From Rebecca billardiae RCC1528 (taxonomy: Eukaryota; Protista; Haptophyta), in the NCBI GenBank assembly GCA_965240325.2, contig OZ251222.1, forward strand, positions 930,001 to 994,000: a DNA stretch of 64,000 bases, written 5' to 3'. The notes below the pieces were generated by a model. The model was not told the DNA's origin and made no database searches. It worked only from the letters and a program-made list of their open reading frames with translations. Each line of letters begins with the position of its first letter. Position 1 is the first letter of the stretch. The position numbers and the translations under genes were made by a program. Positions 10,536-28,476 of this stretch are shown here, piece by piece.

Positions 10536-13500
10536 CTACAGGTAGAGGTCGCTCGAGCGATTGCCCCACGCCTGCCTGACGGCCTGCTTGCTGCTGTCCG
10601 AGAGCTTGTTGGATCTGGCGCCGCACGCGCGGCGTCACCCCGAGTCCGACACGCAGCCACGGCGCACGTGCGCGCACGGGAGGCGGCGCGGGGGCGGGCG
10701 GGGGCACGCGCGCGTCAGCCGGGGCGCCTGCCCGCGCCCGCGCGCGGCAGGTGCGGATGGGGGTGGGTGCGGAGCCGGCCAGCCGCCTCGGCCACATTGA
10801 CCTCACCGCCGACACGTGTGCGCGCGGCCCCGCCGCCCCCGGAACGCCGCCGCGAGGGCGGCGGCGAGGGGGCGGCGCGCGAGCGGCGCGCGCGGTGTAG
10901 CAGCGCCGCTGTCTCGCGCGCTCGTGCCGCAGCGCCGAGCGCGCCGCCTCCGCCCGAGCGCGTGCGCGCAGGTGCCGTGCGTGTGCGTGTGCGCGTACAT
11001 CAGGCCGAGCGTCTGCAGCGTGGTGTTGTGCTTGAGAGCGTCGGCAAGCGCAGTGCCCGAGGGGTCGCCCAGCGCGTTCGTACTGCACGGCGCAAGGGGG
11101 ACGGCGCGAGGCGCGGCGCGGCGGGGTGGGGCGAGGCGGCGCGCGCTCAGCGCCGCCGTCGCGCGCGCGCGGAGGGGCGGCGCGCGCCGGGCTCGACCCC
11201 GCGCGCACGGCTGCGCGCGCGCCCCGCCGCCGCCGGCCGCCGACACGTGTGCGCGCGGCCCCGCCGCCCCGACCGCCGCCGCGAGGGCGGCGGCGAGGGG
11301 GCGGCGCGCGAGCGGCGCGCGCGGTGCAGCAGCGCCGCTGTCTCGCGCGCTCGTGCCGCAGCGCCGAGCGCGCCGCCTCCGCCCGAGCGCGTGCGCGCAG
11401 GTGCCGTGCGTGTGCGTGTGCGCGTACTGCAGGTAGAGCGTCTGCAGCGTGGTGTTGTGCTTGAGAGCGTCGGCAAGCGCAGTGCCCGAGGGGTCGCCCA
11501 GCGCGTTCTCACTGCACGGCGCAAGGGGGTCGGCGCGAGGCGCGGCGCGGCGGGGTGGGGCGAGGCGGCGCGCGCTCAGCGCCGCCGTCGCGCGCGCGCG
11601 GAGGGGCGGCGCGCGCCGGGCTCGACCCCGCGCGCACGGCTGCGCGCGCGCCCCGCCGCCGCCGGCCGCCGACACGTGTGCGCGCGGCCCCGCCGCCCCG
11701 ACCGCCGCCGCGAGGGCGGCGGCGAGGGGCCGGCGCGCGAGCGGCGCGCGCGGTGCAGCAGCGCCGCTGTCTCGCGCGCTCGTGCCGCAGCGCCGAGCGC
11801 GCCGCCTCCGCCCGAGCGCGTGCGCGCAGGTGCCGTGCGTGTGCGTGTGCGCGTACATCAGGCCGAGCGCCTGCAGCGTGGTGTTGTGCTTGAGAGCGTC
11901 GGCAAGCGCAGTGCCCGAGGGGTCGCCCAGCGCGTTCGTACTGCACGGCGCAAGGGGGACGGCGCGAGGCGCGGCGCGGCGGGGTGGGGCGAGGCGGCGC
12001 GCGCTCAGCGCCGCCGTCGCGCGCGCGCGGAGGGGCGGCGCGCGCCGGGCTCGACCCCGCGCGCACGGCTGCGCGCGCGCCCCGCCGCCGCCGGCCGCCG
12101 ACACGTGTGCGCGCGGCCCCGCCGCCCCGACCGCCGCCGCGAGGGCGGCGGCGAGGGGGCGGCGCGCGAGCGGCGCGCGCGGTGCAGCAGCGCCGCTGTC
12201 TCGCGCGCTCGTGCCGCAGCGCCGAGCGCGCCGCCTCCGCCCGAGCGCGTGCGCGCAGGTGCCGTGCGTGTGCGTGTGCGCGTACTCCAGGTAGAGCGTC
12301 TGCAGCGTGGTGTTGTGCTTGAGAGCGTCGGCAAGCGCAGTGCCCGAGGGGTCGCCCAGCGCGTTCCGACTGCACGGCGCAAGGGGGTCGGCGCGAGGCG
12401 CGGCGCGGCGGGGTGGGGCGAGGCGGCGCGCGCTCAGCGCCGCCGTCGCGCGCGCGCGGAGGGGCGGCGCGCGCCGGGCTCGACCCCGCGCGCACGGCTG
12501 CGCGCGCGCCCCGCCGCCGCCGGCCGCCGACACGTGTGCGCGCGGCCCCGCCGCCCCCGGAACGCCGCCGCGAGGGCGGCGGCGAGGGGGCGGCGCGCGA
12601 GCGGCGCGCGCGGTGCAGCAGCGCCGCTGTCTCGCGCGCTCGTGCCGCAGCGCCGAGCGCGCCGCCTCCGCCCGAGCGCGTGCGCGCAGGTGCCGTGCGT
12701 GTGCGTGTGCGCGTACCCCAGGTAGAGCCGCTGCAGCGTGGTGTTGTGCTTGAGAGCGTCGGCAAGCGCAGTGCCCGAGGGGTCGCCCAGCGCGTTCTCA
12801 CTGCACGGCGCAAGGGGGACGGCGCGAGGCGCGGCGCGGCGGGGTGGGGCGAGGCGGCGCGCGCTCAGCGCCGCCGTCGCGCGCGCGCGGAGGGGCGGCG
12901 CGCGCCGGGCTCGACCCCGCGCGCACGGCTGCGCGCGCGCCCCGCCGCCGCCGGCCGCCGACACGTGTGCGCGCGGCCCCGCCGCCCCGACCGCCGCCGC
13001 GAGGGCGGCGGCGAGGGGGCGGCGCGCGAGCGGCGCGCGCGGTGCAGCAGCGCCGCTGTCTCGCGCGCTCGTGCCGCAGCGCCGAGCGCGCCGCCTCCGC
13101 CCGAGCGCGTGCGCGCAGGTGCCGTGCGTGTGCGTGTGCGCGTACTGCAGGTAGAGCTCCTGCAGCGTGGTGTTGTGCTTGAGAGCGTCGGCAAGCGCAG
13201 TGCCCGAGGGGTCGCCCAGCGCGTTCGTACTGCACGGCGCAAGGGGGACGGCGCGAGGCGCGGCGCGGCGGGGTGGGGCGAGGCGGCGCGCGCTCAGCGC
13301 CGCCGTCGCGCGCGCGCGGAGGGGCGGCGCGCGCCGGGCTCGACCCCGCGCGCACGGCTGCGCGCGCGCCCCGCCGCCGCCGGCCGCCGACACACGGCGG
13401 CGCGCGCGCCGGCCTCGCCCCACCCCGCCCCACCCGCGCGCAGCGCCCGCTCCCCCGGCCCGCGGCGCGCCACCGACGGCGGCAGCGGCACAGCGCGCGC

Positions 13501-15196
13501 ACACAGCGCGCGCGTGCGCGCGCTGTGCGGCGCACCTGAGAAAGAGCGTCCGCAGCGCGGGGCTGCCCTTGAGCACGCCGGCCAGCGCGCGCACGAGCTC
13601 CTCGCCGATGCCGGTCTTGTCGAGGTCGAGGAACACGAGCGCTTCGGAGGCGCGCACTAGGTGCAGCAGCGCGGGGCCGTGCTCCTTCACCACCGCCACC
13701 TTGCCCATCCATTTCGCCTCCGCGAGCTGCATGAGCGCCTCCGCCGAGGGCAGCCCCACTGCCCGCGCCAGCGCCTCCAGCTCCACCACCGTGATCACCG
13801 CTGCCGGGCGCGCGCTGCGGCGCAGCAGGGCCTGCACGAGCGGGTGCTTGGCCTGCTCTGCGCCCAGCACCCACTCTGCGGCGTCGCAGTCGAGGTAGCC
13901 GACGGGGTACGGCGCGCGCACGCGCCGCAGTGACGTGCTGGCCGCGACCGCGTCGGCGAGGGCCGTGAGCGCAGCGCCCGACGGCAGGACCACGAGGAGC
14001 AGCTCCACGAGCCCATCGGCGAGTCTCACCGTCGGAGGGCGCGCGCTGCGCTGCAGCAGGGCCTGCACGAGCGGGTGTGCGAGCTGCTCTGCGTCCAGCT
14101 CCATCACCTTGGCGTCGCAGTCGAGAACGCCGACGGGGCGCGGCGCGCGCACGCGCCGCACCGACTGGCTGGCCGCGACCGCGTCGGCGAGGGCCACGAG
14201 CGCAGCGCCCGACGGCACGAACGCGAGGCGCAGCTCCTCGATCGTGTCCGCCGCCAGCTCGTCGAGCGGCATGCCCTGCCCCAGCCGGAGCACGTACACG
14301 AGCGGGTTCATGCCCGAGCGCCACGAGGGGAGGAAGACTTTGGTCACGAGCTGCGCCAACGACGTGACCAGCGAGGCGGCGAGCACGTACGGGTTGACGG
14401 GGTACTCCTGCGCGTGCGTCACGAGCGCGTACTTGGCGAAGATGTACGCCTGCAGCAGCACCTGCGGCGTCGCTTCGAGCGCCGACTCGTACGCGATGCG
14501 CACCGTCGCGTACCACTGGAAGAAGGCTTCCAGCCGGCCGTAGTCTGCGGGCAGGCCGGCGCACGCGAGCAGCGCGCGCGGGATGTACAGCCGGTTGCGG
14601 TTGTACGCGCGCATGGCGAGGAGCACGTCGAGGCCGAGGATGCCCACCGGACCGAGGCAGACGGCGAGCATGAGCAGATTCTCCTCGTAGCCCAGGTCCT
14701 CGTCCTCGAGCACGCTCGAGCCGACGTAGCGGACGATGCCGAGCATGGTGGCGAGGCACTGCAGCGAGACGAACGCGGTAGTGAGAGACGCCCACCACGG
14801 GTTGCCCGTGCTGTACAGCTGCACGATCAGGTAGATGTCGAGCCCGGCGTCCGCGATGAAGGCCGTGTGCGACGCGACGCCGTGCAGGTACACGCCCGCT
14901 GCGAAGAGGGAAGGCACGATCACCCGAGCGAGCGACAACTTCGATATGAACTCTATCCACTTGGACCAGAGCGTGCGCGTAGCGCTACGCGGGCGGCGGC
15001 TGGACGATGGTGCGCCCGGCCCATTGTCGCGGTTGCTGAGCGCTGCCTCCGAATCGTCGCTCCGCGCCGCGTCGTTGTTGATGATCGGGGCACGCGGTGC
15101 GGCGTCGCTCCGCGCCGCGTCGTTGTTGATGATCGGGGCACGAGGTGCGGCCTCGACATCTTCGTTCCACGCGGAAGTTGATCCGCACGCGCCCAT
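10536..15196 (-). CDS. XK-related membrane domain + RI-like LRR protein, ~747 aa; exons 15196-13536, 13229-13146, 12800-12717, 12369-12286, 11940-11857, 11511-11428, 11082-10999, 10614-10536
   Basis: N-terminal MGACGS. XK-like motifs D.GLDIYL..LY..G.PWWASLT..F, ESALEATPQVLLQAYIF and SLVTSL. Six 84-nt phase-2 exons each encode a 28-aa repeat xNALGDPSGTALADALKHNTTLQxLxLx. All introns are GT-AG. The terminal exon encodes the cap SNKLSDSSKQAVRQAWGNRSSDLYL*. Spliced length is 2244 nt and in frame. Confidence 0.85.
10806..13393. repeat. Tandem array of six ~429-bp units (84-nt LRR exon + 345/347-nt intron)
   Basis: Exon starts are spaced 429, 431, 429, 429 and 429 bp apart, and the introns differ at only a few positions. 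Confidence 0.97.
13805..14217 (-). repeat. Older 231-bp (77-aa) internal coding duplication in exon 1 of the XK-LRR gene
   Basis: PSGAAL.ALADAVAAS.S.RRVRAP.PVG.LDCDA….L.AEQ..HPLVQALL.RSARP occurs twice. Confidence 0.9.
15054..15152 (-). repeat. 48-bp tandem duplication (AAPRAPIINNDAARSD x2)
   Basis: Seen in both DNA and translation. Confidence 0.9.
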
Positions 15197-15400
15197 GCGT
15201 ACGCGCGCGTGCGAGCCGTTTCGTCCGCACGGTCCTCGCCGGGGCCGATCGGGGCGCCGCCCCGAAGAGGCAGAAATGGAAAGTCGAGATCGGAGATCCC
15301 AACGAGTCAGGAGAGCTGCCCTCGTGCACACCTGTCCCTGCAGCTGTGTCTTTAAATTAGTCCACAGCACTTTCAACTTTACAGGTGCAGGCAGCCAGGC

Positions 15401-16589
15401 CAAGGGTAGTAAGGGTGAGCAACTCCGCTGGCGACAGCCGCGGAGGTCGGGAGGGCCAAGGGTGGTCAGGGTCGCCGACTCCAGCGGAGGCCGGCCCCGG
15501 AGCTTCGCTTCCGATTTTTTGCAGCGGCGCGGCGCGCTGGGCCGCCGCCGCTGTGGCGGGCCGCTCGGGGCGTGCACGGCGTGGGCTCGTGCGGCCGCTG
15601 CCGCGCACGCCGAGCGATCCGGCGCGGGCTCGCGGCTTGTCGATGGCCTCGCGCGCCGCAGCGCGACGCGCGCCTTGCCTAGCTTCGCCTGTCTCGCGCC
15701 TTGGCCGCCGTGCACGCGTGCGCCGCCAAACCGCAAGCTCGGCATACCTCTCAGCCGAGCGTGCACGTGCCTTGCGCGACGCGACGCGGGCATTGCCGCC
15801 AGGCGATGTAGCCGTAGTGCGAGCGCGCGCCGTGAAGCCTCGGCGCGGATCGAGAACAATGAAATGATGCCGCGTACGCGCGTGGACCGTCTGTTCGTTG
15901 AGCAGTGCTGAAAGCTGCACGACTGACTCTCTTGCCGGGGCGATCGTCACGTCGCATCGTCACGCAAGGCTCACACACACGTCATAGTGGCGTTCATCGT
16001 TTTGGCTACCACGCTCGACTAGTCTTCACGAGTCGCAGCGTCGCGATAGCCCATCGTTCAACGGAGGACCGTGATGTCCATTGGTGGTTGATGCGTCAGC
16101 AGTTGTCGACAGCTGACCGAGACGTTGAAGACACTCTCGATCCGCGCTGAGGCTTCACGGCGCGCGCTCGCACTACGGCTACATCGCCTTGCGGCAATGC
16201 CCGCGTCGCGTCGCGCAAGGCACGTGCACGCTCGGCTGAGAGGTATGCCGAGCTTGCGGTTTGGCGGCGCACGCGTGCACGGCGGCCAAGGCGCGAGACA
16301 GGCGAAGCTAGGCAAGGCGCGCGTCGCGCTGCGGCGCGCGAGGCCATCGACAAGCCGCGAGCCCGCGCCGGATCGCTCGGCGTGCGCGGCAGCGGCCGCA
16401 CGAGCCCACGCCGTGCACGCCCCGAGCGGCCCGCCACAGCGGCGGCGGCCCAGCGCGCCGCGCCGCTGCAAAAAATCGGAAGCGAAGCTCCGGCGCCGGC
16501 CTCCGCTGGAGTCGGCGACCCTGACCACCCTTGGCCCTCCCGACCTCCGCGGCTGTCGCCAGCGGAGTTGCTCACCCTTACTACCCTTG
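15401..16589. mobile_element. Non-autonomous foldback DNA transposon, P/Galileo-like
   Basis: 455-bp inverted arms (15401-15855 and 16135-16589, about 3 mismatches), termini CAAGG…CCTTG, and a 7-bp direct repeat GCCAGGC on both flanks (15394-15400, 16590-16596). Confidence 0.88.
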
Positions 16590-16866
16590 GCCAGGCACTC
16601 GCGCGGACGCCGAGCCTTGCGCGGGCGGAGTGCGCGTAAATACCGCCGTACCGGTAAGTAACAAGGGGCTTACAAATTGATGAGTACACCAGCTTGATCT
16701 TTCTAAGCCGCACCGCGGTACCGGTAGATGGTGGCTCACAAATTGATGAGTATCTACATACACGCTTCTTGATCCTTCTATATAACAAATCGAACCGCGT
16801 TCCTATTGAAATTGACTTCCTCTATTTCAAGCGGGTACATTTGATTACGGCCCGCGCCAGTCCGGT

Positions 16867-27608: not shown

Positions 27609-28476
27609 TAAGAGACGCACACAGCTCAGGCAGGCGAGATCTAGCAAACAGCGCGCTCGGTACGCCGACATGCAGTTTGAAACAGTATATGACCCATGCA
27701 CATGCGCACTTTGTCAAAACAATACGGCCCTTGGACCGGCGACCAAGTTTTCAACGTCGATGAGACGATGACTAAACTTTACTGACAATGGCACGCCCAC
27801 CGGTTAGTTATTGACTCACGTCCGGGCGCGGCTATTTCGTCAATCGCGTCTTGCTAATGGAGAGCAATGGGCCAATGTACGTATGTACCCCTCGAAAACG
27901 GAAAAAGCGAAAACTCACCCTCCAACAGCCCTCAAAATCGTCCCCCGTCCCCTATTCTTTGATCAATAGATCTTTTTGACAACGTAGTGAGGGCCCCCGG
28001 CGGGGCTCCACGCTACGCGCTCCGCCCTGCACCGCGGGCCACATAAGAGACGCACACAGCTCAGGCAGGCGAGATCTAGCAAACAGCGCGCTCGGTACGC
28101 CGACATGCAGTTTGAAACAGTATATGACCCATGCACATGCGCACTTTGTCAAAACAATACGGCCCTTGGACCGGCGACCAAGTTTTCAACGTCGATGAGA
28201 CGATGACTAAACTTTACTGACAATGGCACGCCCACCGGTTAGTTATTGACTCACGTCCGGGCGCGGCTATTTCGTCAATCGCGTCTTGCTAATGGAGAGC
28301 AATGGGCCAATGTACGTATGTACCCCTCGAAAACGGAAAAAGCGAAAACTCACCCTCCAACAGCCCTCAAAATCGTCCCCCGTCCCCTATTCTTTGATCA
28401 ATAGATCTTTTTGACAACGTAGTGAGGGCCCCCGGCGGGGCTCCACGCTACGCGCTCCGCCCTGCACCGCGGGCCA
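27609..28476. repeat. Tandem duplication, 2 x 435 bp, apparently identical
   Basis: Constant 435-bp offset. Each unit starts with the dispersed TAAGAGACGCACACAGCTCAGGCAGGCGAGAT motif. Confidence 0.95.

Follow-up and report, generated by a model that had tools for sequence, protein, structure and literature searches.

An algal gene that joins the N-terminal half of the XK fold to a variable LRR array

Xkr proteins are built from ND and CD repeats (PMC8298096; PMC12334663), giving eight TM plus intramembrane helices. In hXkr4 the chemistry relevant to scrambling sits in the ND repeat, where a vestibule containing D125, D129 and E313, together with P316, has been linked to membrane thinning and scrambling; K+ occupancy has been reported for this vestibule, and the cavities C1 and C2 sit at the ND-CD interface (PMC12334663). 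The Kell-associated protein XK belongs to the same family; it has both repeats and no LRR, and its partners are VPS13A and Kell. A second system for comparison is LRRC8, which likewise originated when a membrane domain was fused to LRRs (PMC6363415). A third comprises the NLR-type proteins and the one-repeat-per-exon LRR receptor candidates of brown algae and fungi. The gene described here combines half of an XK fold with LRRs. It belongs to a rare family, and literature searches (XK-related proteins with LRRs; algae or protists) yielded no earlier description and no characterised protein of this layout, in keeping with the statement of the first-pass annotation that none was known.

The gene lies on the minus strand of the window, by which we mean the whole 64,000-nt stretch of DNA analysed, with its start codon at 15196. 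The translation of 13536-15196 opens with MGACGS, and all the motifs on which the annotation had been based (MGACGS, FIADAGLDIYLIVQLY, NPWWASLT, YESALEATPQVLLQAYIF and SLVTSL) are found in the minus-strand translation of 14330-15196. Exon 1 (13536..15196, minus) comprises 553 codons plus 2 nt, ending in ag before a donor gtgcgc at 13535. Within its single ORF an N-terminal tail leads into the half-XK membrane domain, after which come two 77-aa units and then the first of the RI-type LRRs; the exons downstream are six LRR exons of 84 nt and then a cap exon. The membrane region and the LRRs had been assigned to one gene, and this assignment stands; they lie in a continuous ORF in this alga, and within a single ORF or a single transcript in relatives. 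The third-position GC content reaches 0.94 within the XK part and 0.91 over exon 1 as a whole, compared with 0.63 just upstream of the ATG, a contrast that is evidence for the reading frame as well as for the start codon. The locus is an intact gene with a predicted length of ~747 codons.

The single-repeat, ND-only membrane domain occupies aa 76-306 (14279..14971, minus), as delimited from Pfam and an AlphaFold model. Its relationship to XK had been proposed from short motifs. An HMM search now gives a match to PF09815 (XK-related) of 36.2 bits and E 4.5e-09 over aa 107-282, where the curated gathering cut-off is 24.8 bits. The match spans only positions 4-171 of the 337 in the profile, so that the earlier view that about half of the fold is present holds, and the half can be specified as the ND, the N-terminal repeat with TM1-4 and its intramembrane helices. 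When the family profile was compared with the PDB, XKR4 (2e-08), XKR9 (3.6e-07) and XK (residues 6-184, E 3.7e-03) were matched, each time in the ND region. Several weak Pfam matches (EBP, AzlD, EACC1, Auxin_inducible and Reovirus_L2; E 0.17-2.3) fall far under their cut-offs and were discarded as noise.

The AF2 model of the domain (pLDDT 83.6, pTM 0.75) places TM1 at aa 88-129, TM2 at 133-162, the IH1 hairpin at 170-198, TM3 at 220-258, TM4 at 269-293 and an IH2-like helix at 298-306. As modelled it has the ND fold, with TM1 and TM2 splayed around IH1 and with TM3 and TM4 as a parallel pair. A structural comparison ranked rat XKR9 and human XKR4 first and second among 48,161 PDB chains, with Z of 12.2 and 11.2 respectively, although Z ~12 is not decisive alone for helical bundles. 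Superposition on rXKR9 (7p14_A) gives Z 12.8 and an rmsd of 3.3 Å over 158 aa, involving chain residues 4-195 only. Foldseek matches to XKR8 and XKR9 were weak by E value (0.24-0.37), though with a probability of 0.99-1.0. A structure search of the ESM Atlas gave a best TM score no higher than 0.31, and the Atlas feature search returned sub-threshold leads only, these being short PF09815 clusters with scores of 0.85-0.87.

Compared with Xkr8, Xkr9, Xkr4 and CED-8, the algal protein thus has a homologous ND made up of TM1, TM2, an IH1 hairpin with a Gly-Pro turn, TM3 with E..PQ..LQ, and TM4. Unlike them it lacks the CD repeat (TM5-8 and IH3). The rest of the gene and the relatives contain no further conserved TM segment, and tblastn with the half-XK domain and the relative P0001 as queries found no separate CD gene or second XK-like piece in the window, a search that a very divergent CD would escape. 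With the CD absent there is no ND-CD interface, and hence no C1 or C2 cavity. The algal protein also differs in lacking a C-terminal inhibitory helix or caspase site, in carrying an LRR solenoid at its C-terminus and an acylation motif at its N-terminus, and in being known so far from an alga and other microbial-eukaryote-type sequences and not from animals.

The residues linked to scrambling can be traced by alignment. TM1 (14810..14935, minus) carries F113, D116 and D120, which phmmer alignment to 9boj_B equates with Y122, D125 and D129 of hXkr4, and with F23, D26 and D30 of hXkr8; the D-x3-D pair is therefore kept. TM3 (14423..14539, minus), containing the YESALEATPQVLLQAYIF motif, carries E237, E241, P244 and Q245, and on alignment by phmmer and the family profile E241 corresponds to hXkr4 E313 (hXkr8 E141) and P244 to hXkr4 P316. 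Within the family D116 and D120 are each retained in nine of the ten members, E237 and P244 in all nine, Q245 in eight of nine and E241 in seven of nine. Judged from the sequence, the acidic residues of TM1 and TM3 that characterize the apoptotic Xkr scramblases are in place. The member P0008 is without D116, D120, E241 and Q245, yet has the same architecture, so the acidic vestibule is not indispensable to the family.

The membrane domain is joined directly to the first LRR-like strand by the motif GMPLDELAADTIEEL (aa 308-322; 14231..14275, minus), modelled as a helix (311-316) followed by a strand (321-323). At this position P0017, P0006, P0008 and P0003 have G(L/M/V)P..(E/A)L, and G308 is invariant in the family alignment. 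There follow two 77-aa beta/alpha LRR-like units (13806..14241, minus), repeats that had been noted earlier and that TRF recovers as a 231-nt tandem of 1.9 copies with 85% matches. Both include a segment resembling an RI-type LRR, L.L....PSGAAL.ALADAVAAS.S...V, and are modelled as alternating strands and helices, with pLDDT of 77-84 in the first unit and ~50 in the second; no Pfam family was matched by these units. The last part of exon 1 (13536..13805, minus) includes in its translation a clear RI-type LRR, LVFLDLDKTGIGEELVRALAGVLKGSPALRTLFL, modelled as strand-helix-strand.

The variable LRR array that had been annotated is real. It is a 429-nt tandem of 6.0 copies holding six 84-nt phase-2 exons (10999..13229, minus) bordered by ag and gt, at 13229-13146, 12800-12717, 12369-12286, 11940-11857, 11511-11428 and 11082-10999, and separated by near-identical introns of ~345 nt. 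The six exons read xNALGDPSGTALADALKHNTTLQxLxL, conforming to the RI-type 28-aa repeat L..L.L..N.LGD.G...LA.AL..N.., and differ only at codons 1, 24, 26 and 28 of the unit. A lone exon scores only E 0.12 with LRR_6, since the 24 positions of that profile extend across the exon border. The terminal exon (10536..10614, minus; acceptor cgccag) encodes SNKLSDSSKQAVRQAWGNRSSDLYL and the stop, and forms an LRR C-terminal cap. P0033 and P0011 also carry its motif N.LSD...Q....AW at their C-termini, and P0017 has QLEQAW. The C-terminus is therefore an LRR solenoid plus cap exon, and not the caspase-cleaved inhibitory tail of Xkr proteins. With the NLR-type proteins and the brown-algal and fungal candidates the array shares RI-type (LRR_6) repeats that are predicted to be cytosolic, and cassette exons with variation confined to binding-face residues. 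It differs from them in having no NACHT, NB-ARC, ROCO or TIR domain (a Pfam search of exon 1 with an E limit of 10 gave no match to NACHT or NB-ARC), and in having a membrane-embedded half-XK as its partner.

Relatives are rare, with 16 matches among 1.84 billion representatives. The known range covers Rebecca billardiae, one MMETSP algal transcript and environmental assemblies, all being microbial-eukaryote-type sequences. Word-index protein searches gave P0001, P0011, P0016, P0042 and P0043, and pattern scans of metagenome and viral contigs yielded no relatives. The closest relative is the MMETSP transcript (protein P0017). A survey of XK plus LRR layouts of the kind first proposed shows the half-XK with LRR_6 in several relatives within one ORF or transcript: in P0017 (transcript), P0003 (an 888-aa ORF), P0008, P0011/P0033 and P0002+P0004, with LRR_6 scores of 39-83 bits. 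Exon 1 is colinear with P0001/P0017 at 50% identity over 448 aa. The lineages of the family share only 24-38% identity, and conservation along the protein is highest in the membrane domain.

At the N-terminus, MGACGS (15179..15196, minus) matches the N-myristoylation consensus (Gly2, Ser6) with Cys4 as a candidate site of palmitoylation. The closest relative's transcript opens with MGSCAS immediately after an in-frame TGA, and the protein P0017 has MGSCAS as its start, so that the acylation-type start with its nearby cysteine, pointed out in the first-pass annotation, is kept there as MGxCxS. This fits a predicted pattern of dual acylation, by myristoylation and palmitoylation.

From the topology of Xkr proteins, the distribution of charge and the acylation motif we infer that the LRRs lie in the cytosol, as would the N-terminus, in common with Xkr proteins. 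Lys and Arg are concentrated on the predicted cytosolic loops, and the relatives have no conserved hydrophobic segment after TM4. Any sensing would on this placement be intracellular, and not at the cell surface. Two hydrophobic stretches at aa 322-343 and 390-420, both within the 77-aa units, would put the LRR on the outer side if they were truly TM. They were rejected as extra TM segments on the basis of their RI-LRR pattern, their modelling as strand/helix units, and a hydrophobicity that is not conserved in relatives.

The best overall explanation, which we consider to have an even chance of being correct, is that this is an LRR-controlled, membrane-tethered intracellular recognition protein, with the half-XK as a membrane-perturbing effector. 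With both termini in the cytosol, the LRR domain would be held just beneath the membrane. The ND would retain buried D116, D120 and E241 and the TM3 proline as in the vestibule of hXkr4 and hXkr8, and it is this retention of scrambling-linked residues that makes such a recognition protein the most likely reading. Ligand bound at the LRR face would alter the state of the ND, homo-oligomers would probably stand in for the missing ND-CD pairing, and the result would be lipid scrambling or a local perturbation of the membrane. In its design such a protein would resemble LRRC8, where a cytosolic LRR is combined with a four-TM pore domain (PMC6363415). A more specific proposal, which we regard as distinctly unlikely, is that these are single-repeat XK scramblases in which at least two ND-only subunits pair into an ND-CD-like assembly. 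Pairing would be controlled by a hypervariable cytosolic LRR binding a pathogen or damage ligand, and an algal immune receptor inside the cell would then act directly through scrambling, phosphatidylserine exposure or cell death. On this reading the family may also preserve the XK fold as it was before duplication.

The half-XK could alternatively be a passive anchor or adaptor that tethers a cytosolic LRR scaffold or recruits a partner, as XK recruits VPS13A, and that by itself neither scrambles lipids nor perturbs the membrane. This is somewhat unlikely, but there is evidence in its favor. XK (9yg5_D) carries the annotation of a membrane adapter, rXKR9 did not scramble in vitro (PMC8298096), the cavities of the ND-CD interface (PMC12334663) are absent, and P0008 keeps the architecture after loss of the acidic residues. 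Against this, an anchor would have no need to keep buried D116, D120, E237, E241, P244 and Q245 across lineages of 24-38% identity, nor would its membrane domain be expected to be the best conserved part of the protein, and the predicted acylation motif would already provide attachment to the membrane.

A quite improbable explanation is an oligomeric channel or transporter, with four-TM subunits around a central pore regulated by the LRRs as in LRRC8/VRAC, generating ion or solute flux and not scrambling. The layout does match that of LRRC8, which has four TM, a short intracellular link and cytosolic LRRs (PMC6363415) with a proposed regulatory role towards the membrane part. Cations could be coordinated by the buried acidic residues, as with K+ in the hXkr4 vestibule (PMC12334663). 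However, the likeness is one of analogy only. The membrane domains are unrelated, a pannexin fold as against the Xkr ND, and LRRC8 proteins have typical-type LRRs and form hexameric anion channels. No Pfam pannexin match was obtained in exon 1, and pannexin chains give Z of 7.8-8.6 with rmsd of 6-8 Å, below XKR9 and XKR4 (pannexin/connexin Z overall is only ~8-9, with poor rmsd). Channel activity of the XK family is not described in the literature examined. A decaying remnant or artefact, either a truncated XK pseudogene beside an unrelated LRR array or separate TM and LRR genes, is very improbable and already largely refuted: in its favor are the repetitive locus, which has a 462-nt inverted repeat immediately upstream, and a break of frame within the domain of one relative (L004/L005), but the ORF runs unbroken from membrane domain into LRRs with high third-position GC, the architecture is colinear in one transcript and, among several divergent relatives, in single ORFs, and both the MGxCxS start and the N.LSD..AW cap are conserved.

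A natural ND-only protein bearing the residues important in hXkr4 is a ready-made minimal construct with which to test the sufficiency of the ND. It could also test the origin of the XK fold from a homodimeric half. Its diversifying LRR recognition module is linked to a domain whose animal relatives expose phosphatidylserine in cell death, suggesting a testable route by which recognition could lead to a cell-death or membrane response in a phytoplankton lineage. After LRRC8, this would be the second instance in which a cytosolic LRR has independently captured a four-TM membrane domain.

Between the acylation motif and the membrane domain lies a predicted disordered tail (aa 7-75; 14972..15178, minus), with pLDDT of 29-36 over aa 1-70. 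It contains a 16-aa tandem duplication, AAPRAPIINNDAARSD x2, which at the DNA level is a 48-nt tandem of 2.1 copies at 15055-15155. The locus as a whole is highly repetitive, and the host alga is GC-rich.

The gene lies on the minus strand and begins with an exon running from an ATG at 15196 to a splice donor at 13536/13535, giving a stop-free ORF of 553 codons. Translation of 15196-14330 (-) begins MGACGSTSAW, and the motifs quoted in the first-pass annotation follow. GC3 reaches 0.94 in the membrane part and 0.91 in exon 1 as a whole, compared with 0.63 in the 300 nt upstream, a contrast that makes both the reading frame and the start codon credible. Six LRR exons follow on the same strand, at 13229-13146, 12800-12717, 12369-12286, 11940-11857, 11511-11428 and 11082-10999. 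Each is 84 nt long, in phase 2 and bordered by ag and gt, and all lie within a 429-nt tandem array. Their consensus product is xNALGDPSGTALADALKHNTTLQxLxL, and the variable positions are confined to codons 1, 24, 26 and 28, with changes only at codon positions 1 and 2. The terminal exon (10614-10536, -) codes for SNKLSDSSKQAVRQAWGNRSSDLYL and the stop codon, and its N.LSD...Q...AW motif is present again at the C-termini of related proteins. The total length is about 747 codons; searches were made with exon 1 or single exons rather than the joined protein.

The membrane domain is a genuine XK-like domain and not a chance match. Residues 107-282 score 36.2 bits against the Pfam XK-related profile (PF09815; E 4.5e-09), for which the curated cut-off is 24.8, and human XKR4 is found by plain phmmer against the PDB (E 0.01). 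XKR9 and XKR4 are built of two structurally related repeats with pseudo-two-fold symmetry, the N-terminal repeat (ND) comprising TM1-4 with intramembrane helices and the second (CD) comprising TM5-8 and IH3 (PMC8298096; PMC12334663). Only about half of the canonical fold had seemed to be present, and that half is exactly the ND, since the match is limited to profile positions 4-171 of 337 and to residues 4-195 of XKR9. An AlphaFold model using an alignment of 11 family members (pLDDT 83.6, pTM 0.75) has TM1 at residues 88-129, TM2 at 133-162, an IH1 hairpin at 170-198, TM3 at 220-258, TM4 at 269-293 and an IH2-like helix at 298-306. Foldseek gave a probability of 0.99-1.0 for XKR8 and XKR9 only, with query-normalised TM scores of 0.46-0.49 and weak E-values. 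VIA-align places model residues 25-246 on residues 4-195 of rat XKR9 (7p14_A), with Z 12.8 and an rmsd of 3.3 Å over 158 residues. A search of 48,161 representative chains that did not use Foldseek put XKR9 first (Z 12.2) and XKR4 second (Z 11.2), followed by generic four-helix bundles with Z of 9.8 or less and far fewer residues aligned. The family profile finds XKR4 (2e-08), XKR9 (3.6e-07) and XK (3.7e-03), with every match in the ND and none in the CD. The remainder of the gene holds no CD, and tblastn with the half-XK and P0001 as queries found none elsewhere within the window.

The N- and C-termini of Xkr proteins are cytosolic, and an N-terminal acylation motif, the pattern that MGACGS fits, needs a cytosolic N-terminus. 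With an even number of TM helices, the end of the ND returns to the cytosol. Lys and Arg were counted in the exon-1 sequence using the helix limits of the model, and total 7 in the N-flank, 6 in the TM2-TM3 region and 3 after TM4, all predicted to be cytosolic, compared with 0 in the TM1-TM2 loop and 1 in the TM3-TM4 loop, both predicted to be external. The relatives have no conserved hydrophobic segment beyond TM4. On these grounds the LRR domain is most likely cytosolic, and most likely kept close to the membrane by GMPLDELAADTIEEL, a short conserved junction. Within the 77-aa LRR-like units (13806-14241, -), two hydrophobic stretches were considered as TM segments and rejected; they match the pattern of RI-LRRs, and the model builds them as strand/helix units, with good confidence in the first unit and low in the second.

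We infer a membrane-tethered intracellular recognition protein in which the ND would be the output module. The cavities of canonical Xkr proteins are placed at the ND-CD interface (PMC12334663). As this interface is missing from the algal protein, and a pseudo-two-fold axis relates ND to CD, the fold would most simply be completed by homo-oligomerisation. In hXkr4, D125, D129 and E313 (D26, D30 and E141 of hXkr8) lie at the bottom of the ND vestibule, their neutralisation reduces membrane thinning in simulations, and TM3 is broken at P316 (PMC12334663). In HMMER alignments the algal D116, D120, E241 and P244 fall on D125, D129, E313 and P316. These positions are conserved within the family: D116 and D120 are each kept in 9 of 10 members, and E241 and P244 in 7 and all 9 of 9, alongside E237 (9/9) and Q245 (8/9). 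The exception is P0008 (contig L006, 702-2783), in which D116, D120, E241 and Q245 become S, G, H and M with the half-XK and LRR layout intact; judged by its sequence, it would in effect be a natural charge-neutralised variant. The half-XK might otherwise be a passive anchor or adaptor, in the manner of XK with VPS13A.

A well-documented analogue of the proposed recognition protein is LRRC8, in which an intracellular link joins four TM helices to cytosolic LRRs that are believed to control the membrane part (PMC6363415). LRRC8 originated when a pannexin became fused to LRRs (PMC6363415), and the membrane fold of the algal protein is that of the XK ND. An LRRC8-like channel is a further alternative to the recognition protein.

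When 1.84 billion representatives were searched exhaustively with phmmer, only 16 proteins were returned at E ≤ 1e-3, a krill Xkr being the one named match. The closest relative, P0001, is 62-64% identical within the domain and lies on a transcript-like contig of 1,931 nt. Its MMETSP version, P0017 (603 aa), starts MGSCAS, and on the P0001 contig the corresponding ATG is immediately 3' of an in-frame TGA, indicating that the MGxCxS start is conserved. Half-XK and LRR_6 occur in one ORF in P0003 (888 aa), whose neighbours on a genomic contig are BTB-BACK-MATH and Mpv17/PMP22 genes, and the same layout is found in P0008 (693 aa) and P0011/P0033 (422 and 476 aa). As the TM region and the LRRs lie in a single ORF, here and in relatives, they are parts of one gene rather than separate genes, and a pseudogene or gene-model artefact is an unlikely source of this arrangement. 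In one further relative (L004 1483-4049; L005 372-2938) the gene is divided between two ORFs, P0002 and P0004, overlapping by 4 nt, with the frame broken in the IH1-TM3 loop in assemblies from two different runs; a genuine frameshift, a very short intron and an assembly error common to both could each explain the break. P0006 (528 aa) has a half-XK and a long C-terminal tail with no LRR family at E ≤ 0.01. The CD half is absent from all these relatives, whose contigs are all GC-rich (62-70%). The protein is thus a member of a known family, XK-related, in a single-repeat form fused to LRRs; the first-pass annotation knew of no characterised protein of this architecture, and full-text literature searches on XK-related proteins with LRRs, algae, protists or named algal genera likewise found no description of the combination.

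Relatives lacking MGxCxS have cysteine-rich stretches just before TM1 (P0003 residues 66-80, P0013 residues 96-118; for example CCQAILICLCCPCRC), which may be alternative palmitoylation sites. In the present gene the coding N-terminal tail contains a 48-nt tandem duplication at 15055-15155 (2.1 copies, 96%), with AAPRAPIINNDAARSD occurring twice, and its GC3 of 0.76 is below that of the remainder of exon 1. The second and third LRR exons (12800 and 12369) are spaced by 431 nt rather than the usual 429, through a 2-nt indel in the intron, and the last three LRR introns differ from one another at only 1-4 positions. About 200 nt upstream of the start codon begins a 462-nt inverted repeat (15394-15855 and 16135-16596; 99% complementary, 279-nt spacer), which may be a foldback element or the end of a transposon, or may have arisen in assembly. 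A 435-nt unit bearing no relation to the LRR array is duplicated in tandem at 27609-28476, its two copies being 100% identical.
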